Source: Macrostomum lignano (taxonomy: Eukaryota). From it: a DNA stretch of 64,000 bases. Where the stretch lies: positions 44,815 to 108,814 of the forward strand of contig NIVC01001542.1 in the NCBI GenBank assembly GCA_002269645.1. Direction: 5' to 3'. Positions 6,492 to 64,000 of the stretch are shown here, piece by piece (the stretch's first letter is position 1; each line of letters opens with the position of its first letter). The notes beneath the pieces were generated by a model. The model worked only from the letters and a program-made list of their open reading frames with translations. It searched no databases and was not told the origin of the DNA. A program made the translations under genes and the position numbers.

Positions 6492-7118
6492 GACTCTGCT
6501 GTTGAAAGTTCTAGCAGCAAAATTGCTTAGATTACAAGCCGACTGCAGTCGGTTCAAACAATCGTCTTTAAACTGCCATCCTACGGAATTAAATAAAATA
6601 CTATACAAGCTATGAAGGCAAGCAATGTGCACACAGTATTGTTCTGCTGTACAGATTAAATTGAAACACTGTATTCTAGGTGCAGTAATAGATGAACATT
6701 CACAAGTACAATGAGCCCAGCCAACCAGGGTAGAAATGGAAGTTCAGCTTTTTGATGCCTGTACAAGAGTACAGAGAGGGCTGTACGGCAAGCAGAGTTG
6801 CAGCACTCTATCCCTTGTTTCTACCAGTGCGCACAGACGGAAACACAGCTGTGCGGAAAACTATGAGCTAAATTTATCTTTAGTGATAAATAGCAAGATA
6901 AAAGCAATTGTACATGTATATATAAAATTTGCACTGAAATGTGTGGCAGTTAGAAACAAAATTAGCAAATGAACATTAAACAGTGTGATTAAAAATGACG
7001 TAAACATTTATCGCCGTGTGAAAATTACCAAAACTCGGTGTAATACAGTAGCGCATGCAGAAACTTTAACTGGTGGACGGCAACACTTATAAAAGATGCG
7101 ATTTAAAAATTCGACCTA

Positions 7119-31900: not shown

Positions 31901-34900
31901 AGACCTCAAATCCCAGTGAGACTGGACCTCAAATCCCAGTTAGACTAGATCTGAAATCCCAGTGAGACTAAACCTCAAATCCCCAATCCCAGGTGCTGGA
32001 CGGTCGCCAGCTGGCCCTGAAGATCAGCGCCAATTCCGTATACGGTTTCACCGGAGCCCAAGTGGGCAAGCTGCCCTGCCTGGACATCTCTTCAAGTGTC
32101 ACCGCATTCGGCCGGACCATGATTATGGAAACTAAGCGATACGTTGAAGAGCGCTACACCGTTGCCAATGGCTACGCTCACGACGCCAAGGTGATCTACG
32201 GCGATACGGACTCGGTGATGTGCCGGTTCAATGCGGCCACGGTGGCTGATGCCATGAAGCTGGGCAGGGAGGCTGCGGATTACATTAGCAGCAAATTTCC
32301 ACCCCCGATTAAGCTGGAGTTCGAGAAGGTGTACTGTCCCTATCTGCTTATCAACAAAAAGCGGTGAGTCGGGTTGGCTTTGAGTTGGCCTGAGAAATCG
32401 CCCTTCAATATCACCTGAGAATCGACCTAAATCTCACCTAATAATCGGTCTAAATCTCACCTGAGAATCGTCCCCAAATCTCACCTGAGAATCGCCCCCA
32501 AATCTTACCTGAGAATCGTCCCCAAATCTCACCTGAGAATCGTCCCCAAATCTCACATGAGAATCGCCCCCAAATCTCACCTGAGAATCGCCACCAAATC
32601 TCACCTGAGAATCGTTCCCAAATCCCAAATCTCACCTGAGAATGGCCCTCAAATATCACTTGTAAATCGCTCCCGAATCTCACCTGAGAATCGCCCCTGA
32701 ATCTCACCTGAGAATCGCCCCTGAATCTCACCTGAGAATCGCCCCGTAAATCCGCACAATTCTGTAGCTACGCAGGCCTGTACTTCACCAAGCCGGACAA
32801 GCACGACAAGATGGACTGCAAAGGCATTGAAACGGTTCGCCGGGACAACAGTCCACTGGTTGCCAATCTGGTCAACGCCTGTCTGCACAAGATCCTCATC
32901 GATCGGGATCCCGATGGCGCAGTGCAGCACGCCAAGAGCGTCATTAGCGACCTGCTGTGCAACCGGGTTGACATCTCCCAGCTGGTGAGATGGGGGAATC
33001 GGTCAAAATATAGCCGTGTACTCAATTGGGAATTATTAGGAAATCAATATACTGTGTACTAGTATAAATTAATTTTAAGTCAATCTATTTTTGAGTACAA
33101 TGTGTTACTTTCTGCTATAAGTAGGTTAAAAGCGCACGCCACCAATTTATTATATTCATAAATTCCCGGCCAGGTAATCAGCAAAGAGCTCACAAAAACT
33201 GATGACGAATACGCTGGCAAGCAGGCTCACGTGGAGCTGGCCAACAAGATCAGGAAGCGCGACCCCGGCTCCGCCCCTCAGCTTGGCGACCGGGTGCCCT
33301 ACGTGATTGTGTCTGCCGCCAAGGGCACCCCGGCCTATCAGAAGGCCGAAGATCCCATCTACGTCCTGGAGAACAATGTACCAATTGATACGAATTATTA
33401 CCTGGAGAACCAATTGGCTAATCCACTACTGCGTATATTTGAGCCTATTCTAGGCGACGGTAAAGCTCGCTCAATGCTGCTAAGCGGTGAGCACACTCGG
33501 GTGAAAGCTGTGGTCCACTCCAAAGTTGGTGGTTTGGCCGCTTTTGCTACTAGGAGAGCCGCCTGCCTCGGCTGCAAGGCGGTGCTGCCGCAGGACGCCG
33601 CCAATGGGGCCGTGTGCAAGCACTGCGAGCCCAACGAGTCGGCGCTCTACCAGCGGGAGGTGCGTTGAGTTTTTCGATACACATCGGTAGAATGCTCCAT
33701 TTGATACATGTCGGTAGAATTCTTCATTCGATACATCTCAGTAGAATTCTTCATTCGATACATGTCGGTAGAATTCTTCATTTGATACATGTCGGTAGAA
33801 TTCTTCATTCGATACACGCGGTAAAAATCATTCATGCAGTACATATCGGTAGAATGCTTTATTCGATACATATCGGTAGAGTGCTTCATTAGCTGCATGT
33901 AGCTAGGGTAGAAAGTTTTTTTTCGATACATATCGGTAGAGTGCTTCATTAGCTGCATGTAGCTAGGGTAGAAAGTTTTTTTCGATACATATCGGTAGAG
34001 TGCTTCATTAGCTGCATGTAGCTAGGGTAGAAAGTTTTTTTCGATACATATCGGTAGAGTGCTTCATTAGCTGCATGTAGCTAGGGTAGAAAGTTTTTTT
34101 CGATACATATCGGTAGAGTGCTTCATTAGCTGCATGTAGCTAGGGTAGAAAGTTTTTTTCGATACATATCGGTAGAGTGCTTCATTAGCTGCATGTAGCT
34201 AGGGTAGAAAGTTTTTTTCGATACATATCGGTAGAGTGCTTCATTAGCTGCATGTAGCTAGGGTAGAAAGTTTTTTTTCGATACATATCGGTAGAGTGCT
34301 TCATTAGCTGCATGTAGCTAGGGTAGAAAGTTTTTTTTCGATACATATCGGTAGAGTGCTTCATTAGCTGCATGTAGCTAGGGTAGAAAGTTTTTTTCGA
34401 TACATATCGGTAGAGTGCTTCATTAGCTGCATGTAGCTAGGGTAGAAAGTTTTTTTCGATACATATCGGTAGAGTGCTTCATTAGCTGCATGTAGCTAGG
34501 GTAGAAAGTTTTTTTCGATACATATCGGTAGAGTGCTTCATTAGCTGCATGTAGCTAGGGTAGAAAGTTTTTTTCGATACATATCGGTAGAGTGCTTCAT
34601 TAGCTGCATGTAGCTAGGGTAGAAAGTTTTTTTCGATACATATCGGTAGAGTGCTTCATTAGCTGCATGTAGCTAGGGTAGAAAGTTTTTTTTCGATACA
34701 TATCGGTAGAGTGCTTCATTAGCTGCATATAGCTAGGGTAGAAAGTTTTTTTCGATACATATCGGTAGAGATTCTGTATCTATCTAATGTTCTTCAATCA
34801 ATCAATGCAGGTCGGCGTTCTTCGCGTCCTCGAAGAGAAATTCAACCGTCTGTGGACTGAGTGCCAGCGCTGTCAGGGCTCCCTGCACGAGGACGTCTTG

Positions 34901-39361: not shown

Positions 39362-42290
39362 ATGACCAAAATGAAGAAGAAATTCACTCGCGGCGAGGCC
39401 ACCACCTTCATCTCGCGCAAGCAGGCGCTGAAGCGGCTGCAGCTCTCGCTGAACGACTTCCGCCGGCTGTGCATCCTGAAGGGCGTCTACCCGCAGGAGC
39501 CGGTCAACAGGCGCCGGGTGAACAAGGGCTCTTCAACGCCAAAGGTGTACTATCACCTGAAGGACATCCAGTTCCTCGGCCACGAGCGGGTCATGCAGAA
39601 GCTGCGCGACATCAAGGCTCACCTGAAGAAGGCCAAGCGGGCCAAGGAGCGCGGCGAGATGCACACGGTGGACCGGCTGCAGAGGAATTTCCCCGCCTAC
39701 ACCCTGGACCACATCATCCGGGAGCGCTACCCGGCATTCGAGGACGCGGTCAGGGATCTGGACGACTGTCTCTGCCTGTGCTTCCTGTTCTCCCGCCTGC
39801 CCAAAGAGCGCGGAGTCCCCGTGGAGCAGATCCGGCTGTCCGCCCGGCTGACTGTGCAGTTCCTGCACTGGGTCATCGCCGCCCGGGCCCTGCGCAAAGT
39901 GTTTGTGAGCATCAAGGGCTACTACTTCGAAGCGGACGTCAACGGCGTGTCCGTGGTGTGGTCGGTGCCGCACCAGCTGGGCCTGCACGACCCGGCCGAT
40001 GTGGACTTCAAAATTCTGCGCACTTTCAACGATTTTTACACCACCATGCTGGGGTTCGTCAACTACAGGCTGTACAGCAGTCTGGGACTGGCTTACCCGC
40101 CTGCGCTGGCTAACGAGGTGAGCTAGTCTTTGTTTCGTGCTTTCCTATTGTACAATTCACCATACTGATCCTAAAGGCCGTGTGATAATTCCAAAATCCA
40201 GTCTCATTATCCCAAAATCTCATCTCATAGTCCCAAAATCCCATCTCATGATCCCCAAATCCCATCTCATGATCCAGAAATCCCATCATAATCTCTAAAT
40301 CCCATCTCATGATCCCAAAATCCCATCTCATGATCCCAATTTTTATCTCACGATCCCAAAATCCCATCTCACAATCCCCAAATCCCATCTTACAATCCCA
40401 AAATCCCATCTCATAATCCCAATGCCTAACTCATGATTCAGAATCCTATCTCGTTCTCAAAATCTTAACTCGTGATCCCAAGATCTCATTCTCATCTCAC
40501 AATCCCAATCCAAAGTACATGCTGAACTAAGCCCCTCCGAACGCCGCTCCGCCCAGGTGGACCCCTCCGACTACTGCCAGACCGGCGAGGCCCACGAAGA
40601 GTTCATGGCGTCGCTCAACCAGCCGCTGTTGAGTCGCCGTGGCGGCGAAGCCGAGGGCAACCCGGCCGAGCCGGACGACTTCCCGGACGAGGAGGCCGAA
40701 GGCGCCGAGGCGGCCAGCGCCGCCAGGCGGAAGGCGCGCGCCCAGCAGCGGCTGTTCAACGGCTGCCGCTTTTTCTTGAACAGGGAGACCCCCAGGCAGA
40801 TTCTCTGCTTTGTGATTCGCTCCTGCGGCGGCGAGGTGAGCCACCAGCCCACCCACACCCCATCAGCCCATCCCACACCCCACCAGCCCATCCCACACCC
40901 CATCAGCCCATCCCACACCCACCAGCCCATCCCACACCCCATCAGCCCATCCCACACCCCACCAGCCCATCCCACACCCCATCAGCCCATCCCACACCCC
41001 ATCAGCCCATCCCACACCCCATCAGCCCATCCCACACCCCATCAGCCCATCCCACACCCCATCAGCCCATCCCACACCCCATCAGCCCATCCCACACCCC
41101 ACCAGCCCATCCCACACCCCATCAGCCCATCCCAAACCCCACCAGCCCATCCCACACCCCATCAGCCCATCCCACACCCCACCAGCCCATCCCACACCCC
41201 ATCAGCCCACCCACACCCCATCAGCCCATCAGCCCATCCCACACCCCACCAGCCCATCCCACACCCCATCAGCCCGTCCCACACCCCATCAGCCCATCCC
41301 ACACCCCACCAGCCCATCCCACACCCCACCAGCCCATCCCACACCCCATCAGCCCATCCCACACCCCATCAGCCCATCCCACACCCCATCAGCCACCCCA
41401 CACCCCACCAGCCCATCCCACACCCCACCAGCCCATCCCACACCCCACCAGCCCATCCCACACCCCATCAGCCACCCCACACCCCACCAACCCACCCACA
41501 CCCCATCAGCCACCCCACACCCACCAACCCACCCACACCCCATCAGCCACCCCATGACTCTCCCAATGCCACGCGCATTTTATTCCCATCCCAGTCGCCC
41601 CGGTTCTCCCTAACCCCCCCCCCCCCAACTGCCGCGCCGACCCTGCAGGTGTCCTGGTCGCCGCTGAGCGGGCCGGGCAGCCGCTACCCGGAGTCGGACC
41701 AGCGCGTCACCCACCAGATTGTCGACCGGCCGCTCGGCGACAGCCGGCTGTCCGGCCGGGCCTACGTGCAGCCGCAGTGGGTGTTCGACTGCGTGAACAG
41801 CGGCTCGCTGCTGCCCACCGGAGACTTCGCGCCCGGCCTGCCGCCGCCGCCTCACCTCAGCCCGTTCGCCGCCTACTCAGCTGACGATGCCGACGGAGGC
41901 GATGAAGCCGCCCAGCTGCCCTACTCGGCCACTCGGTCGGCGCCGCCAGACCCCGTGGAGCTCCGGCGACCGTCCGCTGCCGCTGAACTGGAGGAGGAGG
42001 ACGATTATGAAGCTGAGGATGCTGCGAAGCGGGAAACTGCCGCTGCCGATGCAGCTCAGGTCGGGAAGCAGCAGAAAAAGCAGAAAAAGCCGTCCGTGGT
42101 TGCCGAGGGAACTCAGCGTCGAACTCAGGACGCCAAGCAGGCGGCGGCCGAGGAGCGCCGGCTCCGGGAGATGATGCTGCCGAAGAAGCACAAGCAGCTG
42201 TACAAGAAGATGGTCTTCTCCCGGAAGCGGCAGGCTCGCGAGTCCGCCCAGCTGGCCGAGAAAAAGCAGAAACGGCAGCGAACTGCCTGA
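39362..42290 (+). CDS. PES1: Pescadillo homolog (558 aa, BRCT domain)
   Basis: Exons 39362-40117, 40557-40835, 41649-42290, all phase 0. Motifs [77 protein letters not shown] at 42297. Confidence 0.96.
40190..40510. repeat. ~21-bp repeat (CCCAAAATCCCATCTCATGAT), PES1 intron 1
   Basis: Degenerate tandem copies. Confidence 0.85.
40840..41555. repeat. 20-bp minisatellite (CA(T/C)CAGCCCATCCCACACCC), PES1 intron 2
   Basis: Starts right after the donor GTGAGC at 40836. Confidence 0.95.
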
Positions 42291-48997: not shown

Positions 48998-49900
48998 TTA
49001 ATCCCCTTGTTTCTCGGACTGCTGCTTCTGCTGTTGCTCCCGGACCCGCTCCACCAGCCGGCCCTCCATCTCTGCCTTCTTCTCCGCCTTCTTCTTAGCC
49101 TTCTTCTCTTTCTTGGCCTCCTCCGAGCGGGCCTCCTTCAGCCGGATGAACTTGTCGTCCTGGGCGTCAACCCGGAAGCCGAAGTGGTCCCTGGCCTCCT
49201 CCAGCTCGGCCAGCTTGGCCGCCGCCGCCTCCTCCTTGGCCTGGCGCGCCCTGGCCTGGCGGGCCTCGAACTTGGCGAGCTCCTCGGGCATCCGGGCCAG
49301 ACCGGCGTCAATCCTGGCGTCCAGCTCCGCCAGCCGCCTGCGGCGCTCCTCAGCCGCCTCAGCCCGCCTGCTCAGCATCCCGGCCAGCCCGGAGCCGTCC
49401 AGATCGCCTTCCAGCCAGCGGTCCCTGGCGGTGGCCTCGGCCAGTTGGTCGGGTTCCGGCCAGCAGGCCGAGGGTTCGAGTCCCGTGGCCGCGGCGCCGA
49501 ACCGGCCGATGCAGGCCCGCTGGTAGTCGCGGCCGGCCTCTTGGGCGTTGGCCGGCGGCGGGAAGCCGGACTCCGCCCAGCTGTTGAGGCGGCGGCGCAG
49601 CCGCCGCGGCAGGCCGCTGATGTCGGCCACCAGGGCGGCGCTCTCCGCCGCCGCCGCCGCCGGTTCGACTTCGCCGAATTCAACGGCTTCGTCCAGCTGC
49701 TTGAGCCGTTCGCGGCGCTCCGACATCCACTGGTCGTGAATGTCCGGCTGGCGTCGGCGCAGGTTGAAGTCGTCGACAAGCGAGTGCGGCCGATGCCAGC
49801 GAGAGGCCACGTGCTTGTAGGCCAGGCCGCGGCGGGGGCAGCGGCTGCGGACCGCCCCGTGCTTGAGCAGCCCGCCGAGTTTGGCTTGCAGTGAGCTCAG
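48998..49900 (-). CDS. GADD45GIP1: CRIF1 / mitoribosomal protein mL64 homolog; main exon, start codon unresolved
   Basis: Y...[21 protein letters not shown]; RMPEELAKF; [12 protein letters not shown] and a Lys/Glu-rich tail match the CRIF1 family. Acceptor CCTTCAG| at 49901, phase 0. Confidence 0.8.
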
Positions 49901-49992
49901 CTGAAGGTGCAACGGGGGGAGTTGGTTCTGCAACCGGAATCGAGCTCGGTACCTTCTAAAGGTTTAAAGAGTTTTCTTGAACTATTCAGTAA

Positions 49993-50243: not shown

Positions 50244-50285
50244 ATGTCTGTCTGTCTGTCAGTCTGTCTGTCTTGGTGTCTGTCT
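49993..50285. repeat. (TCTG)n microsatellite
   Basis: Direct inspection. Confidence 0.96.
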
Positions 50286-50342
50286 ACAGTGTGCACAGCA
50301 GCCTTCAGACATGTACACTCTTTGAGCATTGTGCGGTTTGGC

Positions 50343-50866
50343 ACTCATTGGCGTGAATAGCATCCGGGAGAAGTCTAGATCACTCATTGGCGTGAATAGC
50401 ATCCGGGAGAAGTCTAGATCACTCATTGGCGTGAATAGCATCCGGGAGAAGCCTAGATCACTCATTGGCGTGAATAGCATCCGGGAGAAGTCTAGATCAC
50501 TCATTGGCGTGAAAAGCATCCGGGAGAAGTCTAGATCACTCATTGGCATGAATAGCATCCGGGAGAAGCCTAGATCACTCATTGGCGTGAATAGCATCCG
50601 GGAGAAGTCTAGATCACTCATTGGCGTGAATAGCATCCGGGAGAAGTCTAGATCACTCATTGGCGTGAATAGCATCCGGGAGAAGTCTGGATCACTCATT
50701 GGCGTGAATAGCATCCGGAAGAAGTCTAGATCACTCATTGGCGTGAATAGCATCCGGAAGAAGTCTAGATCACTCATTGGCGTGAATAGCATCCGGGAGA
50801 AGTCTAGATCACTCATTGGCGTGAATAGCATCCGGGAGAAGTCTAGATCACTCATTGGCGTGAATA
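50343..50866. repeat. 39-bp minisatellite (GGCGTGAATAGCATCCGGGAGAAGTCTAGATCACTCATT), left arm
   Basis: Interrupted at its TA by the mariner. Confidence 0.96.
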
Positions 50867-52189
50867 CGAGGGGTGATCAAAAAGTTCTGCAACCTTTTGT
50901 TATAGCTTTTAGTTATAGAATCGGCAAAAGCCAAAAACTTACACATATGCGGCTATATCTGTTTGCTATATTTATATGCATTTTTGGGTTCCAAATGTGC
51001 TCCAGTAAAATTTCACAGCCATATATTTTCCATGTGTTTTCAGTAGCTGATGGAAACATCAAAAGACAGTGTTCGCTTCTATATCTTTATGCGCATGCAA
51101 CTTGGTTGCAAAGTGACTGAGACTCACACCGATCTGGTGAATGTTTTAGCTGACTCTGCTCCATCATTTGACACGGTTGCCCGCTGGCTGCGCTATTTCT
51201 TGGAAGGCTGGGACAGCTTCAACGACGAACCGAGGTCTGGCCGACCCCGGACATCTGTGACCGAAGATGTCGTGGCCCATGCCGATGCAATACTCGTAAT
51301 TCGTGAGGATTGGAGCATTATGCTGAGATTCATTGCCTATGAGCTTGGTGTCAGCTATGGAAGTGCCCATAACATCATGCATGAGCAACTGGGCCGCACA
51401 AAGACCTGCGCTCGGTGGGTACCCCATCTTCTCACTCCGGAGCAGCAAGCAGAGAGGGTGCGCATCTGTCGCTTGTGGCTGCAAATGTTTGAGCCCCACG
51501 GCCCACGACAACTGTCGGATGTCATCACAGGAGACGAATGTTGGATCTCCTTCTTTACCATGAAGGATAAGCAGTCCAACATGGTCTGGCTAGCAGAAGA
51601 TGAGCCAAGGCCTGAGGTGCTGAAGACCGGATTCCGCAGTCCGAAGCGGATGTTCACCATTTTTTCAACTCTCAGGGTGTTGTAGCGGTGAACATCCTTC
51701 CAGCGGGTGCCACAGTGACTGCCAGGTACTACACAGACACTGTTCTGCCAGGCGTGCTGCAGGAGCGGCAGGAACGTGCGCGAACTAGGCATGGACCTCG
51801 ACTCCTGCTGCACCATGACAATGCGGCACCGCACAGAGCGGCCTCAACCATGGCGTACCTGGAGCAGCAGGGGGTCCGGCTGCTGCCCCATCCACCCTAC
51901 TCTCTAGACCTAGCACCGTGCGACTTTTGGCTGTTCCCGAGGATCAAATCCGTCATTTCTGGGAGGCCGTTTTCACGCATGCAAGACCTTGCCCAAGCGG
52001 TAAATTCAGCTCTACAGGGTATACCAACTTCGGAGTACCATGACTGCTTTCAGACATGGTGCACACGGATGCGACGGTGCATAGATAGTGTTGGAAAGTA
52101 CTTGAAGGGAATGTGACACTGATTAGACGCCTCGGCTGCTGTAGCACAGAGTTGTGAGGTCACTTGCAGAACTTTTTGATCACCCCTCG
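50867..52189 (+). mobile_element. Tc1/mariner (DD34D) transposon, 1323 bp, full length
   Basis: Perfect 26-bp TIRs CGAGGGGTGATCAAAAAGTTCTGCAA; TA TSD at 50865-66 and 52190-91. Confidence 0.96.
51050..52116 (+). pseudogene. Mariner transposase, ~355 aa if a single missing T (T6 run at 51660-51665) is restored
   Basis: WVPHLL, TGDECW, HHDNA-(34)-CDF. ORFs 51050..51685 and 51688..52116 join as MFTIFFNSQGVVAVNIL. The conserved YSPDL reads YSLDL. Confidence 0.85.
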
Positions 52190-53500
52190 TAGCATCCGGG
52201 AGCAGTCTGGATCACTCATTGGCGTGAATAGCATCCGGGAGAAGCCTAGATCACTCATTGGCGTGAATAGCATCCGGGAGAAGTCTAGATCACTCATTGG
52301 CGTGAATAGCATCCGGGAGAAGTCTAGATCACTCATTGGCGTGAATAGCATCCGGGAGAAGTCTAGATCCCTCATTGGCGTGAATAGCATCCGGAAGAAG
52401 TCTAGATCACTCATTGGCGTGAATAGCATCCGGGAGAAGTCTAGATCACTCATTGGCGTGAATAGCATCCGGGAGAAGTCTGGATCACTCATTGGCGTGA
52501 ATAGCATCCGGGAGAAGTCTAGATCACTCATTGGCGTGAATAGCATCCGGGAGAAGCCTAGATCACTCATTGGCGTGAATAGCATCCGGGAGAAGTCTAG
52601 ATCACTCATTGGCGTGAATAGCATCCGGGAGAAGTCTGGATCACTCATTGGCGTGAAAAGCATCCGGGAGAAGCCTAGATCACTCATTGGCGTGAATAGC
52701 ATCCGGAAGAAGTCTGGATCACTCATTGGCGTGAATAGCATCCGGGAGAAGTCTAGATCACTCATTGGCGTGAATAGCATCCGGAAGAAGTCTAGATCAC
52801 TCATTGGCGTGAATAGCATCCGGGAGAAGTCTGGATCACTCATTGGCGTGAATAGCATCCGGGAGAAGTCTAGATCACTCATTGGCGTGAATAGCATCCG
52901 GGAGAAGTCTAGATCACTCATTGGCGTGAATAGCATCCGGGAGAAATCTAGATCACTCATTGGCGTGAATAGCATCCGGGAGAAGTCTGGATCACTCATT
53001 GGCGTGAATAGCATCCGGGAGAAGCCTAGATCACTCATTGGCGTGAATAGCATCCGGGAGAAGTCTAGATCACTCATTGGCGTGAATAGCATCCGGGAGA
53101 AGTCTAGATCACTCATTGGCGTGAATAGCATCCGGAGAAGTCTAGATCACTCATTGGCGTGAATAGCATCCGGAAGAAGTCTAGATCACTCATTGGCGTG
53201 AATAGCATCCGGGAGAAGTCTGGATCACTCATTGGCGTGAATAGCATCCGGGAGAAGTCTAGATCACTCATTGGCGTGAATAGCATCCGGGAGAAGTCTA
53301 GATCACTCATTGGCGTGAATAGCATCCGGAAGAAGTCTGGATCACTCATTGGCGTGAATAGCATCCAGAAGAAGTCTAGATCACTCATTGGCGTGAATAG
53401 CATCCGGGAGAAGTCTAGATCACTCATTGGCGTGAATAGCATCCGGGAGAAGTCTGGATCACTCATTGGCGTGAATAGCATCCGGGAGAAGTCTAGATCA
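52190..53500. repeat. 39-bp minisatellite, right arm
   Basis: Resumes in register (TA|GCATCC) after the mariner. Confidence 0.96.
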
Positions 53501-54049
53501 ATGCATGCATGGCTTGTGATTTCCGTATGCATATAAAGTACCCAGAGCTAAGGACAGCAGCTGGCACTGTTCCACGCCCAGAAGCGTTCGCAGATCAGAT
53601 TCGATAAGGCAAATACCTGAACTGTAAAAACTGAAGCGCTGGGAGACAATGGAGGGGAGATTCTCAAGCCCCGAACAGATTGGCATCAGGGAAACAGAGG
53701 CAGGGACAGGCATTAACAAAGGCTTCCATGCTTATCACTAGGCTAGCAGCACTGGCACAATGAGACCAGTGACGCCTTACTGCATGCAGTGTTGTGCTTG
53801 ACAATAACTATGAAATAAGCGAGTCCAACGGTTAAATTATCTGCAAAACGTTGGCTCTTACACAGCCCAGTGATTGCGAATGTTGCTGCAGTTTATTTAT
53901 AGCAGTTAAACGCTTACAAGCATTTCTTTAGCGAAAGATAGTCGCGTGTTTTATTAGTGCTAAGAGGCGTATTTGGAGACTCTGCGGGATGGGAAAGGAG
54001 CCTTGGTTATAAGCAGTCATTGCAACACACTGTGGAATGACAGAGGAGG

Positions 54050-54500
54050 GGCCTTGGCAATAGACAACAGCCACTGCAACACACTGTGGGATGACAGAGC
54101 AGGGGCCTTGCATGGCCATAGACAACAGCCACTGCAACACACTGTGGGGTGACAGACGGACCTTGGCCATAGACAGCAGCCACTGCAACACACTGTGGGA
54201 TGACAGAGGGGCCTTGGCCATAGACAACAGCCACTGCAACACACCGTGGGGTGACAGAGGGGCCTTGGCCATAGACAACAGCCACTGCAACACACTGTGG
54301 GGTGACAGAGGGGCCTTGGTCATAGACAACAGCCACTGCAACACACTGTGGGGTGACAGAGGGACCTTGGCCATAGACATCAGTCACTGCAACACACTGT
54401 GGGGCGACAGAGGGGCCTTGGCCATAGATAAAAGCCACTGCAACACACTATGGGGTGACAGAGGGGCCTTGGCCATAGACAACAGCCACTACAACACATT
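54050..54500. repeat. 51-bp minisatellite (GGCCTTGGCCATAGACAACAGCCACTGCAACACACTGTGGGGTGACAGAGG)
   Basis: ~8 copies. Confidence 0.92.
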
Positions 54501-55271
54501 GTGTTGCGACAGAGATATAGTGGCGTTGGTGATAAAACAAAAAGGCTATTTAAACAAATAACCATAAAAACGGTATCATAAAAAGTTTAAGCCACAAAAC
54601 TTGATAGGCTAAGGATTAGCTGAATGCAACGCTAGACAAAGAATGATAAAATATGATTTGTTAACACGAGCCAAGCTATTTTTGAGAAATTTGTTTTTGA
54701 GTACAAAAAGTATATAAAAGAACAATATTACTGACATTAAGAAGATAAAAGTGCACAGGAAAAGTCGCAGATAATGCAATTTTTTGGTGCTAGATAAGAT
54801 CCAATTGTACACTACATAAATAGAAAAGAAAACATAAAACCAAGCACTTCGTATTCGGTTGCAGAGTCGGCAAAAGGCATTAAAAAAGTTGCTTATAAGA
54901 ATAAGATTAACCAGACGATATGTTTAGAAAAAAACTTTTTAAAGCAGAATTGAACGCAGAGACGCAAAAGGAAAATCAAGAAAAGGAATGGAGGATAGGG
55001 CGGAGGAAGGTGAACCGCTTTGGTCCAGATGAAGTTTTTTCAATGTTGCTAAAATAGTAAACACTAAAACAATTTTTTTTACTTAAAAAAACATACAAAA
55101 CGGAACTAAAAATAAAATTTCTACTAGAGACAGAAGCATTACAGAACGACAGAAAAAAACAGCCGAAGGAGTACTGTACATTATTTTACACTAAAGTACA
55201 GGCTGTAACGCCGTCCTACAGACTTTTTGTTGCAGACTTTAACGCACACTGCTACAGATAAGTAGATTTTC

Positions 55272-55825
55272 ACAACCTACTACAGACCCTTAAAGACAGT
55301 CACAACCTACTACACACCCTTAAAGACAGTCACAACCTACTACAGACCCTTAAAGACAGTCACAACCTACTACAGACCCTTAAAGACAGTCACAACCTAC
55401 TACAGACTCATGAAGACAGTCACAACCTACTACAGACCCTTAAAGACAGTCACAACCTACTACAGACCCTTAAAGACAGTCACAACCTACTACAAACCCT
55501 TAAAGACAGTCACAACATACTACAGCCCCTTAAAGACAGTCACAACATACTACAGACCCTTAGAGACACTCACAACCTACTACAGACCCTTAGAGACACT
55601 CACAACCTACTAAAGACCCTTAGAGACAGTCACAACCTACTACAGACCCTTAGAGACACTCACAACCTACTACAGACCCTTAGAGACACTCACAACCTAC
55701 TACAGACCCTTAGAGACACTCACAACCTACTACAGACCCTTAGAGACACTCACAACCTACTACAGACCCTTAGAGATAGTCACAACATACTACAGACCCC
55801 TACAGACCGTGGCACTACTACAGAC
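55272..55825. repeat. 30-bp minisatellite (CACAACCTACTACAGACCCTTAAAGACAGT)
   Basis: Tandem array downstream of the PARP stop. Confidence 0.93.
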
Positions 55826-55871
55826 CCTTACAGCTCCTCACTGCACTTTGGGACAGTCGCATCTTACTACA

Positions 55872-56000
55872 GACTATAACGCACTATAGACTATAACGCA
55901 CTATAGACTATAACGCACTATAGACTATAACGCACTATAGACTATAACGCACTATAGACTATAACGCACTATAGACTATAACGCACTATAGACTATAACA
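55872..56000. repeat. 17-bp repeat (CTATAGACTATAACGCA)
   Basis: ~7 copies ~30 bp after the PARP stop. Confidence 0.92.
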
Positions 56001-56033
56001 GCCAAAATAAGCAAAGCTGCAACGAGTTGCGCC

Positions 56034-59000
56034 TCATTTAAAGTTGAACCGCACCTGCACCAGGTACCTCAGACGCAGCTGATTCACATTGTACACAACG
56101 TACTCATTATAATTGAGCACAGTTGACAGGTTGCTGGCCACCAGCTTGCCAATGGGAACTTTGCACCCGTCGGCCAACTGCTCTGCAGACGAAGGATTTG
56201 GAGTCAATTCTCCAATGCCTTTGACGCTGTTGAATCCGGCAGGCAGCTTGGCCGCCTCATAGTCGGCCTTGTTCAGCTCTCGACTGGTGCCCAGGGCCAC
56301 TTCGCATAAGGCCAGCACACCTGTTGGCTTGCTTCTAGTAGCGTACAGGTAATTGGCCGACTTGCTGCTCACGTCGGCAAAGTACACGCCTTTGCCGAAC
56401 ATGTAGCCTGTGGCCGGCGCCTCGGGGGGCGCCACGCGGAGGCCCTGCGAGATGGGAGCGGGAGATTTGGGGCTGCTTGAGGGCGATTCTTGGGGCAATT
56501 TGAGGGCGATTCTTGAGGCTGTTTGAGGGCGATTCTTGAGGCAGTTTGAGGGCGATTCTTGGGGCAGATTCTTGAGGCAGTTTGAGGGCGATTCTTGGGG
56601 CAGATTCTTGAGGCAGTTTGAGGGCGATTCTTGGGGCAGATTCTTGAGGCAGTTTGAGGGCGATTCTTGGGGCAGATTCTTGAGGCAGTTTGAGGGCGAT
56701 TCTTGGGGCAGTTCGAGGGCAATTCTTGGGGCAGTTCGAGGGCGATTCTTGGAAGGGATTGTCGCTAGATTCTCAAAAGGCTACAGATTAGGCGGTAAGC
56801 GGACTCACCTGAGACAGAATTCCAGCCCAGTTAGACAGCCGAGACCCGTGCCACAGCAGCATCCGGTTAGGCAGATCCGATCTGAACCGAGCAGTCTCAG
56901 GCGCACGCTGCACTTTAAACAGCGCTCCCAAACTCAGGGTGTACAGACTGTGAGTCGGACCGTGAGTAGTCTGCAGGTACCTGTCAATCATGGAGAACTC
57001 CTCAGAATTGGAGTCCACAGGCTCAATATCGCAGGCCAGCCGCCTGTAGCACCGGTCCAGCGGGTGCTCAGCAGCTGCCGAGTCCCCAGACTCCTCCGCT
57101 CCATCGCTAACCACTTTCAGAGCAGTTTGAATCTGCTCCAAGGCCTGCAGCAGATCTGCCTTGGCCTGGATCTCTTCTAGGCTGCGAATAACGGGCGGTA
57201 CCCGCATGCCGAAGTCGTGCGGTATTCGGGTGTAGAAATCGTTGCAGGCCGACACGAGCTTCTGGCCGGAGCTGTGCCCGCCTCGGACCAGCGCTTCGAT
57301 AGCTTTGAGGGCTACGAAACCGGCTTTGATCTGGGCGGCGGTCAGCTTGCCAAGAGGCATCCGCTTGGCATCGTAGCGCATCTCAACCACCGTGTCCTCC
57401 ATCTGCTGCACATCGCAGATCATGCCCAGCAGGGCCTGCAGTGCCGCGTGCAGCCGGCTGGCCGCCTCAGCTTTCCGCTCAGCGGCGGCCTGTTTCTTGG
57501 CTGCTTTGTCAGCTTTGTCGTCACCTGCGCCGCCGTCGCCGCCAGCCTTGTGATCCCGGTGCACCAGATCGTACTTGCCAGCCACCTACACAAATTAATT
57601 TACATTATTTTTAAGCGTTTTTTTGGTAGAAAAAAAACTTTTATTTTCTACTGACAGTAGAGCTATAAGAAAGAGCATCAAATTTCTGAAAAGTTATTTT
57701 AAAAAAAGGTTTCAATTTCGTCTTTTTAGAACCAGAATTTCCCAGGTAAGGTACCACGAGGTACCACAACCCGAACCCTGAACCAAGGTATCACAACTCG
57801 AACCCTGAACCAAGGTACCACAACTCGAACCCTGAACAAGGTACCACAACTCGAACCCTGAACAAGGTACCACAACCAGAACCCTGAACCAAGGTACCAC
57901 AACCAGAACCCTGAACCAAGGTACCACAACCCGAACCCTGAACCAAGGTATCACAACTCGAACCCTGAACCAAGGTACCACAACCAGAACCCTGAACCAA
58001 GGTACCACAACCCGAACCCTGAACCAAGGTACCACAACCAGAACCCTGAACCAAGGTACCACAACCAGAACCCTGAACCAAGGTACCACAACCAGAACCC
58101 TGAACCAATGTACCACAACCCAAACCCTAAACCAAGGTACCACAACCAGAAACCTGAACCAAGGTACCACAACCCGAACCCTGAACCAAGGTACCACAAC
58201 CCGAAACCAGCAAGACCAACCTTGGTAAAAGTTTTAGCAGCCACAGATGCCCATTCATTTTTTGTTTTATCCTCGAACTTCTTGCAGAAGAGCGCCTTGG
58301 CCCGGTCAAGGTCGGGACCACAAGGCACCAGACTGTGCTGACCGGTTTTGCCCACCCGGCCCCAGCGGAACCAGACCCAGTAGTCTCTGGGCGCCTTGTG
58401 CAACAGCTGCAACAGGTAGAACTTGTTGTTGTTAAACTGCAAGTTGGTCTGGTTCAGCATAGCGTCGTACACTGTGCCGCCTTCGGCGTGGACTCGAACT
58501 GAAGCTGCCGACAGGCCCGTCAGCTCGGAGTCCACCGCGGCGCCACGCGGACAAGCACCACCTTCTCGTCTGAGCCGTCTTCATCCTCCTCAGCTGCTGC
58601 TGATGCTGCTGCACGACCGCTGCTACCGTTCTTCTGCTTCTGGCGTTTCTGCTTTTGCTGCCGCTTCTGGGCTTCTTCGTCATCACCGACATCATCATCA
58701 GATGGTGGAGGCGACGGAGACGCGGCTGGCCGCTTGCGAGCCCCAGCTGCCAGACGGCCGCTGGTTCGGCGGGTTGGCGCTGAAGGCGCCGGCGGAGCTG
58801 CTGCAGAGGTTTGCGAGAGGGGAAAGAGTGACGGAGTGACAGACAGTTAACAGAGTGACAGGTAGGTTTGGTGAGTGACAGACAGTTAACAGAGTGACGG
58901 ATAAGTGAGTGACAAGCAGTCAAGACTCGAGAGTGAAGGATAAGTTGGGAGAGTAACTGACAGAGCGACAGACAGCCACCAGCTCACCCGCCCCAGTAGA

Positions 59001-60243
59001 CTTGGCCGCAGCGGTTGCACTTTTAAATTCCCGCTCGGCCAGAACTCTTCGGCGAATATTTCTACGAAAGCCGGTCCTGTCGTTGGTCTGGTGCAGCTTG
59101 CGCAGGTCCACCGTGTAGGAGTTGCCGCCGATGCTGACGGAGACGGAGGCGTCACCCCGGCTGTGCGCGGCCTCCAGCTTGTGGGCCGCTGACGGGGGCA
59201 TGTTGGACCACGGCTTCAGGTCAGCCTGCCACAGCGCTGCGACCTCTGCGAGGGCGACGGTTCATGGGATACTGACAGTCTGACATAGGCTACTGACAGT
59301 CTGACATAGGCTACTGACAGTCTGACATAGGCTACTGACAGTCTGACATAGGCTACTGACAGTCTGACATAGGCTACTGACAGTCTGACATAGGCTACTG
59401 ACAGTCTGACATAGGCTACTGACAGTCTGACATAGGAGCTACTGACAATCTGACATAGGAGCTACTGACAATCTGACATAGGAGCTACTGACAATCTGAC
59501 ATAGGAGCTACTGACAATCTGACATAGGAGCTACTGACAATCTGACATAGGAGCTACTGACAATCTGACATAGGAGCTACTGACAATCTGACATAGGAGC
59601 TACTGACAATCTGACATAGGCTACTGACAGTATAGGAGCTACTGACAATCTGACATAGGCTACTGACAGTCTGACATAGGCTACTGACAATCTGACATAG
59701 GGTACTGACAGTCTGACATAGGCTACTGACAATCTGACATAGGGTACTGACAGTCTGACATAGGCTACTGACAATCTGACATAGGCTACTGACAATCTGA
59801 CATAGGGTACTGACAATCTGACATAGGCTACTGACAGTATAGGAGCTACTGACAATCTGACATAGGCTACTGATATTTCCAATCTGAGATTTTAAAACTC
59901 ACCACGAGTTGCACTATTGCCTGACTGTAGCACAAACACAACTCGAACTTTACGCGATGACCCAGTCGTGCCACCTTTCCGAGTCTGAATGCCTTTGTCA
60001 AAGTCGACCGAAATCTCATAATTATTGGGCAGCTTCAGATCGCACTAAATCAAATATTGTTTTGATTGTTTCAAATTCAATATTTCGATAATTCTTTGTT
60101 CAAGTTATAAAAATGTGCAATCTACGAGTACTTACAGTATTACTATTAGCAGCAATAGCAGCATTCAACGCTGTTATGTGTTTATCTGAGTAGTTTCTCC
60201 AAACATCAGGCCCATCTTCATATTGCCACAATGGTTTAGCCAT
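56034..60243 (-). CDS. PARP2-like poly(ADP-ribose) polymerase with two N-terminal WWE domains (~758 aa; one apparent 1-nt frameshift near 58546)
   Basis: Exons 60243-60136, 60044-59903, 59245-58988, 58800-58221, 57585-56809, 56444-56034 (phases 0,1,1,0,0). WGR (YDAMLNQTN..NNNKFYLLQLL..WGRVG), HD (MPLGKL...FYTRIPHDFG), catalytic H-Y-E (LWHGS, GVYFAD..SKSANY, YNEYVVY). Confidence 0.9.
56475..56752. repeat. 36-bp repeat, PARP intron 5
   Basis: CAGTTTGAGGGCGATTCTTGGGGCAGATTCTTGAGG, period 36. Confidence 0.9.
57762..58205. repeat. 27-bp minisatellite (AACCAAGGTACCACAACCAGAACCCTG), PARP intron 4
   Basis: Tandem array. Confidence 0.93.
59270..59875. repeat. 21/23-bp minisatellite (CTGACAGTCTGACATAGGCTA), PARP intron 2
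   Basis: Blocks of 21-bp units and 23-bp (GGAGCTA) units. Confidence 0.94.
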
Positions 60244-60879
60244 TTTAGATGTTTAGTTTTCTTTTATCTGCAATAATGAAATTTTATATGGTTTCAACCA
60301 TAATTTTAACAGATATTAATAGATATATATATATAGATATTATAGAACTGAATTCTAGTTTACACTTTTTAAACCTATGCTAAATGTGTCAAGATAGTCT
60401 ATTTTTGCATTTTTGCCTTAGCATCATTTTATCACTGAGAGTATTAAAATGGATGGAGGTTTGCAGAAACAGGAGCCAAATTCTGATAGTCTAACACAGG
60501 CCAATACGCAGATATTAAATGATCCAGCAATGCAAAGATATTTTTTGTAAAGTGGCATGAATGTATGGTATGAGCATTGCAGTTAATGCAATATAGTGCT
60601 TGGTGTATACCACTTTCTGTGGCATTTGGCATAGCCACAGTGCAGCCCTTGGCAAGAATACTTTGCATATGGTATTCTTCAGCATTTGTTGCATAGAAAA
60701 AAAAATTCTATCCATTAGACTTCACCAGTCTATCAATAACCCTTTAAGAACTCTGTGCCATATCTTTAATGCAAGGTCAGCAGACTCTGACCCGCAGGCC
60801 ACATGTGTCCACAAGGTCTCTCTATCTGGCTTTTAGGTCCATTGAAAGTTCACAATAGCAATCTAGCCTGCTCAAGGTT

Positions 60880-61230
60880 TGTGTCTTTTCTAAGTTCTCT
60901 CCTCTCCTTTCTCTCTTCTCTCATCTTGTCTCCTTTTCTCCTTTCCTCTCATCTATTATCTTCTCTCTTCTCTCATCTCTCTTTTCTCCTCTCATCTCTT
61001 ATCACATCTCTTTTCCTCTCTCTTCTCATCTTTTCTCCTCTTTTTTCCTTTCTCTTCTCATCTCCTCTTTTCTATCCTTTCATTGCCTTACCTTTCTCTC
61101 TCTCCTATCTTTATCTTTTCTCTTCTCTCATCATGTCTACCATTTTGGCTCTTATTTCTCCTCTTTTCTGTCATCTCTTATCTCCTCTTTTGTCTTTTCT
61201 CTTAACTATTCCATCTCATTTCCACTCTTA
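60880..61230. repeat. Pyrimidine-rich (TC) low-complexity tract
   Basis: Direct inspection; source of spurious ORF 60803..61273. Confidence 0.8.
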
Positions 61231-62025
61231 TCTAGCCCATAGAAATGACCTAGATTCCTTATCAGGCCCTTGAAGTAAAAAGTTGGTCAACCCTCATTTT
61301 AATGAATATTTACGCATTTTTAGAATTTTAGCAAATAATCTTGGCTAATGGTTAAGCTTTAGCTAACTAAGCTTAAGGTAGCAATAGACTAGCAAAGCTA
61401 ATCAGCCAGTTATCACATGATTAATACAAATTTTTAGCAAGCCATTAGCATTTAATAGTTGAATTTGCACTTGCATTAACAATAACAAACTAATGATAGC
61501 TACCTAAAATAACTGGCTAAGGCTAAGCACTATCTTTATATTCAGTAGTGTTCCGCCGTAAGGAGGGTCCATGTACCGTAGCCGTAGCCGTAAGCAAAAC
61601 TACTGCTTACTCCAATTCTCCGTGTTCCGTAGCCGTAGGGACCCCGAAATTACCATATTTCCGTAGTTCCCGTAGCCGTAGCCGTAGCCGTAGTTTTAAC
61701 AAAAAGTCTACAAAACAAAACATTTTGACTCAAGAAGATAACCTAGTGCTTAAACAACTGCAAATTAAATTAGAAAATAAAAGAAACACTTAATTGTCTT
61801 TGTAATATTATATTTTGTCTTTTTTCAGAGCAACAATACTTAATCGTTATTGAAAGTACTAACGCTAGACTGTTTCACATTAATAAAAATTGGAGTTTGC
61901 TAGTGTTTTATTGTACTTTTTTAGGTATATTTTATAAGTTTCTAGGTTTATAATATAGTTTACTAAAAGTATCTTTGTTTTACTCTACCTGTTTCGAATA
62001 TTTTTTCAATTTTTAACATTAATAA

Positions 62026-63000
62026 TGTGGTAGGGCGATCTACCACTGACCGACGAACGTGATGACGCCGTGTGGTGACACTTGCTCATGACTCTCTGTT
62101 TTTCCGTCACTCGGTGCGCCGTCCCTTGCCCCATCCCTCACCCCATCTTTTGCCATTGCTCAATTGTTTGTTAATTCCCGTTTGCGGCTTTAGTGTCGTC
62201 CGCTGCCCCATCGTCTGCCCCATTCCTTGCCCCATCCTTCGCCTTCCTGCCCCATCTGTTGCCCCATCCCTGTCCGGACGACATTGTTTCCCCTATTTAT
62301 AAGACCATTTCGGGCTGCCTTTTGGTTTGTTCGCGCGCGCGCATTTTTTTCCGTATTTGTCGTTTTTCCTCGTGTAAACTCCGTGGTTTGTGCTCGTTCA
62401 TTAGTGTTTGTGTTTATCCAGTTTCTGTTTAGTGTTTATAGTTTTTGCCTCTGCTAAGTAAGTTTTAATAGTTTCGCTTAATAGTTAGTCGTTCGGCACC
62501 CGGCACCGGCCGTGGACATCTTGTGAAATTAATATTTTTCTCTAATAACTACCGCCTGCGCAATTAACAATTGAGGCAGAATCCTTATAAACTATTTAAA
62601 CTATAAAACTATAAACTATTTATAAAGTTTAGTTTATAGTTTAGTTTAAACTATAAACTATTTATAAACTATTTAATCCTCCGACCCTAAGGAAGCCGTA
62701 CAGGCTAACAATAGACATTAGGCATTAAGAGATTAGGTATTAGGGAAGTAGATTAGTTACCGCTAGACAACCTTGATGCCCGGAAAACGCTAGACTTTCG
62801 GACTGAACTAGGGAATTAGACAGTGTCTTACCACTCGGGCACTACACGCTATCACAAGGTTTTCTAAGAAATCGTGTGAGTTAGGAATTCCTAGGAAAAA
62901 TTCATAGTTTTGAATATTTAAAGTAGAAATTTAGTAATTTTAGACAGACAACTAGGTCTGCAGCACGTGAAATAATAGGACAGGAGTTTCCCCTGGAACA
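62026..63000 (+). mobile_element. 5' LTR of a Gypsy-type retrotransposon (TG...CA, ~975 bp)
   Basis: Begins TGTGG and ends GGAACA, 3 nt before the PBS. The left edge is inferred from the TG and a composition change only. Confidence 0.6.
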
Positions 63001-63003
63001 ACT

Positions 63004-63014
63004 TGGTGGCAGCG
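63004..63014 (+). promoter_or_regulatory. Primer-binding site TGGTGGCAGCG (complementary to tRNA-Leu-type 3' end CGCUGCCACCA)
   Basis: Canonical TGG start just after the LTR CA and upstream of gag. Confidence 0.7.
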
Positions 63015-63060
63015 TAAAGGGATCAAGAAACCAGCGGAAAACTAACTAGATAAGTGAAAA

Positions 63061-64000
63061 ATGGCAGGAATTAATGACGCACTAGCGTTACTAGCCGAAG
63101 AACTTAGGAATCGTCTAGAAAAGGACGGCAGGCATGTGAGAATTCAGAAGTACACGCCAAGCCAAGACATTAGGATCTGGTTGACAGCTTTTGATCAGAG
63201 GTGTGAATCAGAAGGAATTGAGGAGAATCATAGGAAAACTGAGCTATTAGCTAATTTAGGCTTAGCAACAGCGTTCGCCGTTACACGACTTAATCTGCCA
63301 GAAGATCTAGGGTATGAAGAATTCAAGGAGCACTTGATCGAGAGATTTGGTAGAATAGGAAATGCGTCAGAGTTTGGAAGAGTTTAGAGCAGAATGCAAG
63401 GAAGGAATGAGTCAAAGGACGCTTATGCTGATGCTGATTGAGCTATCAGATAGGGCCTTCCCGAACATGAATGCAGAACAGCGAGGAAGAGATAGTAGAG
63501 CAGTTTATTAAAGGAGTTAGGATTCCGCCAGATACTAGGGAAGTTAATCTTCGCCCAACCTGCGAATCTGCAAGAAGCTAGGCGAATGCTAAGGCGAATT
63601 GAGGCCGCATGGCAACTATCGCACAAAGGAGGTGTTAGGATGATGAAAGGGAGAAGGAGAGCAAGAGAAGAAGCTCCAAGATTTAGTTCAACAGCAGAAG
63701 AGTGAGTTAGAGCAACAGAAGAAGCTGATTCAGGAGCTGATGGTGCACAAGCCACCACCTATGGTTAGACCAGCCATGCCCAGCTCAGATGCCGCGATGG
63801 AATTATCAGCAGCCGCGCAGCTCGAGATTTGCGGCATATTATCAGCCTAGACCTAGGAGAGAGTTTCCGATTCGTCTTATTCGCCGCAGCAGGAAGGTGC
63901 GCCGGGCATTTCAGCCGAGATTTCCGCATATTATCAGCCTAGCCTAGGAGAGAGTTTCCGATTCGCTCTTATTCGCCGCAGCCAGGAAGTGTGCGCAATT
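63061..64000 (+). pseudogene. Degenerate Gypsy gag (stops/frameshifts), element runs off the window
   Basis: IQKYTPSQDIRIWLTAF...GYEEFKEHLIERFG...RMQGRNES..AYADALIEL..RAFP, broken by a TAG at 63385 and by indels. Confidence 0.7.

Follow-up and report, generated by a model that had tools for sequence, protein, structure and literature searches.

A PARP2-type locus of Macrostomum lignano with the WWE pair typical of animal PARP2 outside the placental mammals

The window analyzed here, a stretch of 64,000 nucleotides that is 100% identical to contig NIVC01001542.1 of the Macrostomum lignano assembly GCA_002269645.1, contains a minus-strand gene of six exons (ATG at 60243, stop codon ending at 56034), which is very likely one of at least three near-identical copies of a single PARP2-type gene family with the ancestral animal PARP2 layout and a reading of 758 amino acids (Table 1). 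The predicted protein opens with two WWE domains, continues through a charged, disordered linker to a WGR domain, and ends with the helical regulatory and catalytic domains. Outside the placental mammals, animal PARP2 usually carries a WWE pair ahead of the PARP core; this architecture is already known, both in databases and in print since 2014, and placental PARP2 is a derived, WWE-less form. The textbook view that DNA-dependent PARPs have no WWE domains is human-centered and describes the derived state. For this window alone, the significance is small, as the architecture is normal for animal PARP2.

Both WWE domains were matched by the Pfam profile PF02825 with scores exceeding its gathering threshold of 21.1 bits (WWE1, 42.4 bits, E 9e-11; WWE2, 50.2 bits, E 3e-13), in agreement with a previous sequence-only reading of the locus, which had assigned WWE1 to exons 1 and 2 and WWE2 to exon 3. 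The remainder of the protein was covered by matches to the WGR domain (PF05406, E 6e-23), PARP_reg (PF02877, E 3e-40), located directly before the catalytic domain, and the catalytic domain itself (PF00644, E 2e-69); there were no Pfam matches in the predicted protein to zinc-finger, PADR1, or BRCT domains. In an alignment of 26 sequences, W316-G317-R318 was invariant and the H-Y-E triad (H609, Y643, and E736) was intact, with all 3 residues in invariant columns. The core belongs to the PARP2 type: it is closest to human PARP2 (538 bits versus 375 for PARP1 and 205 for PARP3), and the protein is a clade 1 PARP with the full H-Y-E triad. The domain order and the PARP2-type core with an intact triad had both been correctly recognized from the sequence, and the domains and exons were found in place, with all 5 introns conforming to the GT..AG rule; what had been overlooked is a frameshift in exon 4, so that the joined exons amount to 2276 nt (2 mod 3).

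Table 1. Coordinates of the PARP2-type gene and associated features within the window.
Feature	Position	Strand	Details
PARP2 orthologue gene, locus BOX15_Mlig024608g1, NIVC01001542.1	56034..60243	-	Conceptual product, 758 aa
Exon 1	60136..60243	-	ATG and first half of WWE1, aa 1-36; GC 39%; donor GTAAGT
Exon 2	59903..60044	-	Second half of WWE1, aa 37-83; phase 1 end
WWE1	60231..59943	-	aa 5-70; Pfam PF02825
Intron 2	59246..59902	-	657 nt; nearly all 21-nt minisatellite, ~29 copies
Exon 3	58988..59245	-	WWE2-coding; carries W89, Y127, Q136, N138, R145
WWE2	59234..59049	-	aa 88-149; Pfam PF02825
Exon 4	58221..58800	-	Charged linker, aa ~150-255, then WGR
Frameshift	58545..58546	-	One G of codon 255 missing; window CGCG-TGGC, paralogues CGCGGTGGC
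Premature TGA	58520..58522	-	In upstream frame (frame A) when the window is read literally; product 262 aa
Internal AG/C acceptor	58504..58505	-	Alternative exon start 58504; in-frame 659-aa product; A0A1I8HDZ1-type UniProt models
WGR	58469..58242	-	aa 281-356; W316-G317-R318; PF05406
Intron 4	57586..58220	-	635 nt; contains 27-nt minisatellite, ~17 copies
Exon 5	56809..57585	-	PARP_reg, aa 406-543, and start of catalytic domain, including H609 at 56850-56848
Intron 5	56445..56808	-	364 nt; contains 23-nt minisatellite
Exon 6	56034..56444	-	Remaining catalytic domain; Y643 at 56384-56382, E736 at 56105-56103
Stop TGA	56036-56034	-	In exon 6

All 115 non-Macrostomum homologues listed share the combination of WWE, WGR, PARP_reg, and PARP domains (PF02825, PF05406, PF02877, and PF00644); most of them are named PARP2, and they range from sponge to marsupials. 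Because these homologues and the non-mammalian PARP2 proteins with WWE domains reported by Perina et al. 2014 (PMC4245714) show the same architecture, it is already widespread. The sequence-only reading had overlooked that the domain combination is not new, and its statement that WWE domains do not occur in PARP1/2/3 holds for placental mammals only. Among the orthologues scanned with Pfam, 8 of 9 contained at least 2 WWE stretches (3 in sponge; 2 each in brachiopod, starfish, annelid, bivalve, shark, frog, and marsupial), and the teleost orthologue contained 1.

Non-placental PARP2 proteins, exemplified by those of Xenopus tropicalis, Scyliorhinus canicula, Trichosurus vulpecula, Lingula anatina, Patiria miniata, and Dysidea avara, aligned to the M. 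lignano protein with 40-48% identity over 88-100% of the length. Apart from the sponge and teleost WWE numbers given above, they are collinear with it (2 WWE domains, charged linker, WGR, PARP_reg, and PARP) and agree with it in the H-Y-E triad and in the ligand residues of WWE2. The M. lignano protein is distinguished by the lack of the ~30-aa basic leader found ahead of WWE1 in most orthologues compared, by a divergent WWE1, in which the stacking residue is Tyr and 2 inserted aa precede the TG motif, and by a longer linker (113 aa). Its C-terminus, FNFK, resembles those of other invertebrate orthologues, whereas the vertebrate xLW tail is absent. An alternative 3' exon in the GenBank g1 model (~53928; ending ...LVQ followed by SLQIRLLALIKHATIFR) was rejected as the true C-terminus because the read-through end VRFNFK agrees with the orthologues.

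Comparison with human and mouse PARP2 (PDB 7AEO, 6X0L, and 1GS0) extends over the entire WGR-HD-ART core, which aligns end to end (538 bits), and includes the catalytic residues and the conserved motif preceding the WGR domain. Placental PARP2 has no WWE domain and, in the 590-residue PDB chain 6X0L_P, 98 residues precede this motif. The basic and acidic linker of the predicted M. lignano protein retains the motif, for which the orthologue comparison yielded the consensus VKTVVxKGKAPVD, and the N-terminal region of human PARP2 aligns to the linker of marsupial PARP2. Judging by this alignment, the placental N-terminal region is the retained linker. The proposal that the WWE pair replaces the PARP2 N-terminal region is at odds with both observations.

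WWE2 retains all 4 canonical ligand-contact residues (W89, Q136, Y127, and R145) when aligned with the WWE domains of TRIP12 and RNF146; the roles of these positions, namely an adenine-stacking aromatic residue, an adenine-binding Gln, a phosphate-contacting Tyr, and an Arg, were described for WWE domains of E3 ligases (PMC11269756, PMC10877565). Across 26 orthologues, there is no variation at W89, Q136, or N138 and next to none at Y127, and R145 is kept in most. Within the WWE family members compared with WWE2 (TRIP12, HUWE1, DTX1, and RNF146; PDB 9BKR, 6MIW, 8R5N, and 3V3L), the TRIP12 domain aligned with an E value of 6e-6 and shares with WWE2 the stacking Trp, the phosphate Tyr, the adenine-binding Gln, and the Asn, Thr, and Arg. 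In the W-x-W motif of WWE2, the first Trp is replaced by Ala. Because the ligand-contact residues are kept, reading of PAR by WWE2 is plausible. WWE1 has Y8 at the stacking position (cf. Y107 of RNF146), Q56, and R67, and its phosphate-Tyr position is occupied by Ile47, the equivalent residue being aliphatic in most orthologues.

The 4 E3 ligases join the WWE domain to a ligase, whereas in M. lignano it is joined to a PARP core. The clade 3 mono-ADP-ribosyltransferases PARP7, PARP11, PARP12, PARP13, and PARP14 resemble the M. lignano protein in having WWE upstream of the PARP catalytic domain but, unlike it, have neither a WGR nor a helical regulatory domain. In clade 3E, to which PARP7, PARP12, and PARP13 belong, another residue stands in place of the catalytic Glu (PMC2964712).

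The frameshift at window position 58545 (~103359 of the contig) consists of a missing G between the linker and the WGR domain, within the conserved motif just before the latter, and a literal reading of the window yields a WWE-WWE-linker product of 262 aa. Two near-identical copies in the same assembly, L002 and L003, both have the additional G. With codon 255 set to X, our model differs from the 758-aa GenBank protein PAA66648.1 (copy g2) only by S65P. The 758-aa fusion would read ...VVLVRGGAAVDSE.... Over 10.4 kb, the window differs from its twin copy L003 by 7 mismatches and 41 gap openings, of which 27 are of 1 nt. Given that the G is present in 2 copies and that indels exceed substitutions 41 to 7, the missing nucleotide is probably a long-read assembly error; together with this reading, we infer that the locus makes the 758-aa protein. 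A 38-nt GT..AG intron (~58563..58526) would also restore the frame. It was rejected on 2 grounds: the other introns are far longer (91-657 nt), and the conserved AAVDSE motif would be lost.

It is unlikely, in our assessment, that the frameshift is genuine and the copy a recently disabled duplicate, a young pseudogene among several redundant copies. The deletion does stand in the deposited assembly, the GenBank model of this copy (PAA66680.1) is truncated, and at least 2 other copies could supply the function; however, the gene bears no further damage, with all splice sites intact and zero substitutions relative to L003 in 2.3 kb of coding sequence. Moreover, L003 has another 1-nt deletion of its own, located within a run of C, and an indel-to-substitution ratio of ~6 to 1 is the signature of consensus error rather than of mutation. 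Slightly less probable still is the use, by this locus or its paralogues, of the internal acceptor, which would bypass the frameshift and produce a WWE-WWE-WGR-HD-ART isoform without the linker, with the junction STGA|ASVRVH. The window as deposited keeps the reading frame across this splice, which also occurs in UniProt models (659, 651, and 562 aa) derived from a different M. lignano assembly. The acceptor (ctgtcggcag) nevertheless has no pyrimidine tract, unlike the 5 constitutive acceptors, and the splice would drop the basic patches and the pre-WGR motif, which is recognizable in all 25 other orthologues compared. One of the linker-less models (P0003) has additional local frameshifts. Gene predictors often create such introns to bridge assembly indels.

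It is highly improbable that the WWE exons and the PARP core form 2 independent transcription units, one for a small protein with the WWE pair and the other for a PARP with a shortened N-terminus. In keeping with such a division, the upstream frame stops at 58522-58520 when read literally and GenBank annotates a 486-aa product (PAA66680.1, MLNQTNL...) from 58460. The latter, however, begins in the middle of the WGR domain, and in the frame of the core no ATG occurs between the upstream stop and one inside the WGR domain. Furthermore, GenBank annotates the intact sister copy as a single protein of 758 aa, and each of the 115 non-Macrostomum homologues listed, among them contigs of mRNA size from sequencing runs, shows the collinear fusion. 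With the assembly-error reading retained, the WWE exons are hidden from the PAA66680.1 model by what is probably a 1-nt error, and the model is correctable.

Activation by DNA breaks is presumably the same as in human and mouse PARP2: the WGR domain would detect the break and lift the autoinhibition that the helical domain imposes, as it does in the human protein. WWE2, and perhaps also WWE1, would bind ADP-ribose or iso-ADP-ribose units of PAR previously made by PARP1, and this binding would recruit PARP2 to the damage or retain it there, a role played by the basic N-terminal region in human PARP2. Feed-forward recruitment to PAR, as envisaged in the sequence-only reading, is plausible and would parallel the PAR binding of the human N-terminal region, which binds PAR and drives branching (PMC6089979). 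Searches of the open-access literature found no binding or activity data on any WWE-bearing PARP2, no functional studies of a non-mammalian PARP2 WWE domain, and no test of the broader idea outlined below.

We tentatively suggest that PARP2 may act in most animals as a "second-wave" polymerase primed by PAR, the WWE pair of which would read PAR made by PARP1 and thereby recruit or activate the enzyme, and that placental mammals may have lost the pair, with the task passing to the basic N-terminal region; we regard this as a possibility somewhat short of probable. Ancestral PARP2 would have had a putative dedicated pair of PAR readers, the function of which could explain both how PARP2 follows PARP1 to sites of damage and why placental mammals can manage without the pair.

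Six-frame translation of the window and inspection of splice sites resolved the PARP2 orthologue into six exons (see table), separated by introns of 91, 657, 187, 635, and 364 nt, all five of which are bounded by GT..AG. The conceptual product of 758 aa, to which residue numbers refer, carries 2 WWE domains, which, each scanned alone, score 42.4 bits (WWE1, exons 1-2) and 50.2 bits (WWE2, exon 3) against Pfam PF02825 (cut-off 21.1); the rest of the protein matches WGR (E 6e-23), PARP_reg (3e-40), and PARP (2e-69). The catalytic residues H609, Y643, and E736 are present, and all 3 columns are invariant in the orthologue alignment. When compared with human PARPs, the core scores 538 bits against PARP2, to which it aligns end to end, versus 375 against PARP1 and 205 against PARP3, and is on these sequence comparisons a PARP2. 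The coordinates, exon assignments, and domain order proposed in the sequence-only reading are borne out by the exon calls and Pfam matches.

Features of the window (approximate position marked ~)
Feature	Position	Strand	Remark
Ankyrin-repeat ORF	1470-6632	-	intronless, 1721 aa
THOC5	~21206	+	
DNA polymerase delta catalytic subunit	27371-33668	+	
Pescadillo	39362-42290	+	second large exon passes through proline/histidine-rich repeat
GADD45GIP1/CRIF1	48998-49933	-	
PARP2 gene	56034..60243	-	six exons
Exon 1	60243-60136	-	
Exon 2	60044-59903	-	
Exon 3	59245-58988	-	
Exon 4	58800-58221	-	
Exon 5	57585-56809	-	
Exon 6	56444-56034	-	

Minisatellites with periods of 21, 19, 27, and 23 nt occur in 4 of the 5 introns (introns 2-5), 3 introns being largely filled. 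Further tandem arrays (periods 51, 30, and 17 nt) crowd the region downstream of the gene (54014-55999), and minisatellite copy numbers vary between the paralogous loci. The GC content is 39% and 48% in exons 1 and 2, near the AT-rich upstream flank, and 56-64% in exons 3-6.

The combination of WWE domains with a PARP2 core, put forward as novel, is already known: Perina et al. 2014 (PMC4245714) described WWE domains on non-mammalian PARP2, and the homologue search (871 proteins at E <= 1e-20) recovered the same architecture widely. Among the matches listed, all 115 non-Macrostomum proteins possess PF02825, PF05406, PF02877, and PF00644, and most carry the NCBI name “poly [ADP-ribose] polymerase 2,” so that the premise of WWE domains being absent from PARP1/2/3 is valid for placental mammals only. 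That premise may stem from the survey of Citarelli et al. 2010 (PMC2964712), in which WWE was confined to clades 2 and 3. The 115 include vertebrates (teleosts, gar, sturgeon, sharks, lungfish, frogs, salamanders, turtles, lizards, and marsupials) and invertebrates (molluscs, echinoderms, a brachiopod, annelids, and a sponge). Rescanning of 9 orthologues revealed 2 WWE stretches each in the brachiopod, starfish, annelid, bivalve, shark, frog, and marsupial, 3 in the sponge, and 1 in the teleost.

Human PARP2 has only 98 residues before the conserved pre-WGR motif (PDB chain 6X0L_P, 590 residues), and this region aligns to marsupial PARP2 residues 205-270, an alignment that serves as a lead rather than a test. 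Marsupial residues 205-270 constitute the linker that follows the WWE pair. Together with the wide animal distribution, this alignment indicates that the WWE pair is ancestral in animals, with placental PARP2 as the derived form; rather than the pair replacing the PARP2 N-terminal region, as had been suggested, the placental region would be the remainder after the pair was lost. This loss appears placental-specific, since marsupials retain both domains; teleost and gar PARP2 keep only the second. The M. lignano protein begins directly at WWE1, without the basic leader of ~30-40 aa that most orthologues compared possess. At the C-terminus, the vertebrate orthologues compared carry an additional xLW (or PW) tail, e.g., FNFTQLW, and the invertebrate ones, M. 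lignano included, terminate at FNFK or a close variant. In the human enzymes PARP1 and PARP2, the terminal Leu-Trp belongs to the surface on which HPF1 docks.

The sequence-only reading overlooked that exon 4 is 1 nt short. The joined exons total 2276 nt (2 mod 3), and the frame breaks between the linker and WGR, where the window has CGCGTGGC. Taken at face value, the frame upstream of this point meets a TGA at 58522-58520, yielding a 262-aa product, and the PARP-core frame has no ATG before one inside WGR. The window is 100% identical to NIVC01001542.1 (GCA_002269645.1), and the assembly holds 2 further copies, L002 on NIVC01001545.1, annotated as PAA66648.1 (758 aa), and L003 on NIVC01003024.1, both with CGCGGTGGC at this site. 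With the frameshifted codon as X, the window translation is identical to PAA66648.1 but for S65P, and its coding sequence shows no substitutions relative to L003, which has its own private 1-nt deletion in a C run of exon 6. Over 10.4 kb (53561-64000), there are 7 mismatches between the window and L003 as against 41 gap openings, most of them 1-2 nt long, a ratio resembling uncorrected long-read consensus errors; we therefore regard the frameshift as quite probably an assembly artefact, the main alternative being a genuine lesion in a very young pseudogene copy. The observation of the domains is real, though this copy has a broken reading frame, and the gene, correctly read, is itself ordinary. 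By the same ratio, single-base indels are likely elsewhere in the window, so other reading frames there may be falsely broken.

The GenBank model for this copy, PAA66680.1 (486 aa), seems to have been spoiled by the frameshift: it begins at an internal Met within WGR (58460) and hence lacks the WWE exons. It spans 53928-58460, and the additional 3' exon with which it ends, close to 53928 and coding for ...SLQIRLLALIKHATIFR, sits within a 51-nt tandem array; we rejected this 3' end, the orthologue-matching end being VRFNFK at 56034. An internal acceptor at 58504 would restore an in-frame product of 659 aa, and UniProt models from another M. lignano assembly use it; however, it has no pyrimidine tract, and the splice deletes the pre-WGR motif (consensus VKTVVxKGKAPVD), recognisable in all 25 other orthologues compared. 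We consider it more likely a predictor's workaround than a genuine isoform.

In human PARP2, WGR binding to DNA breaks releases the helical-domain autoinhibition of the catalytic domain (PMC10450202), and the domains and triad required for this mechanism are present in the M. lignano protein. Solved WWE-ligand complexes share an adenine-stacking aromatic residue and an adenine-hydrogen-bonding Gln, with Tyr and Arg on the proximal phosphate (PMC11269756; RNF146 contacts from PMC10877565). By sequence alignment, WWE2 has all 4 contacts (W89, Q136, Y127, and R145), and its N138 and T141 correspond to TRIP12 N820 and T823; across the 26 orthologues, W89, Q136, and N138 are invariant, Y127 and T141 nearly so, and R145 is found in most. 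In WWE1 the stacking residue is Y8, like RNF146 Y107, and Q56 and R67 are present, but its ligand competence is uncertain because Ile occupies the phosphate-Tyr position, which is aliphatic in most orthologues. Plausibly, WWE2 would recognise PAR at sites of damage and help to recruit or hold PARP2 there, a logic shared with the N-terminal region of human PARP2, whose PAR binding activates chain branching (PMC6089979). Our search of open-access literature found no paper testing the function of PARP2 WWE domains. The earlier interpretation is right in part as regards mechanism and wrong as regards novelty.

The gene neighbourhood is ordinary nuclear. Two adjoining ORFs at 51050-52116, whose sole profile match is a weak one to HTH_32, under the curated cut-off, look like a mariner-type transposase remnant, and a 39-nt repeat forms long arrays on either side of them (50259-50855 and 52160-53532).
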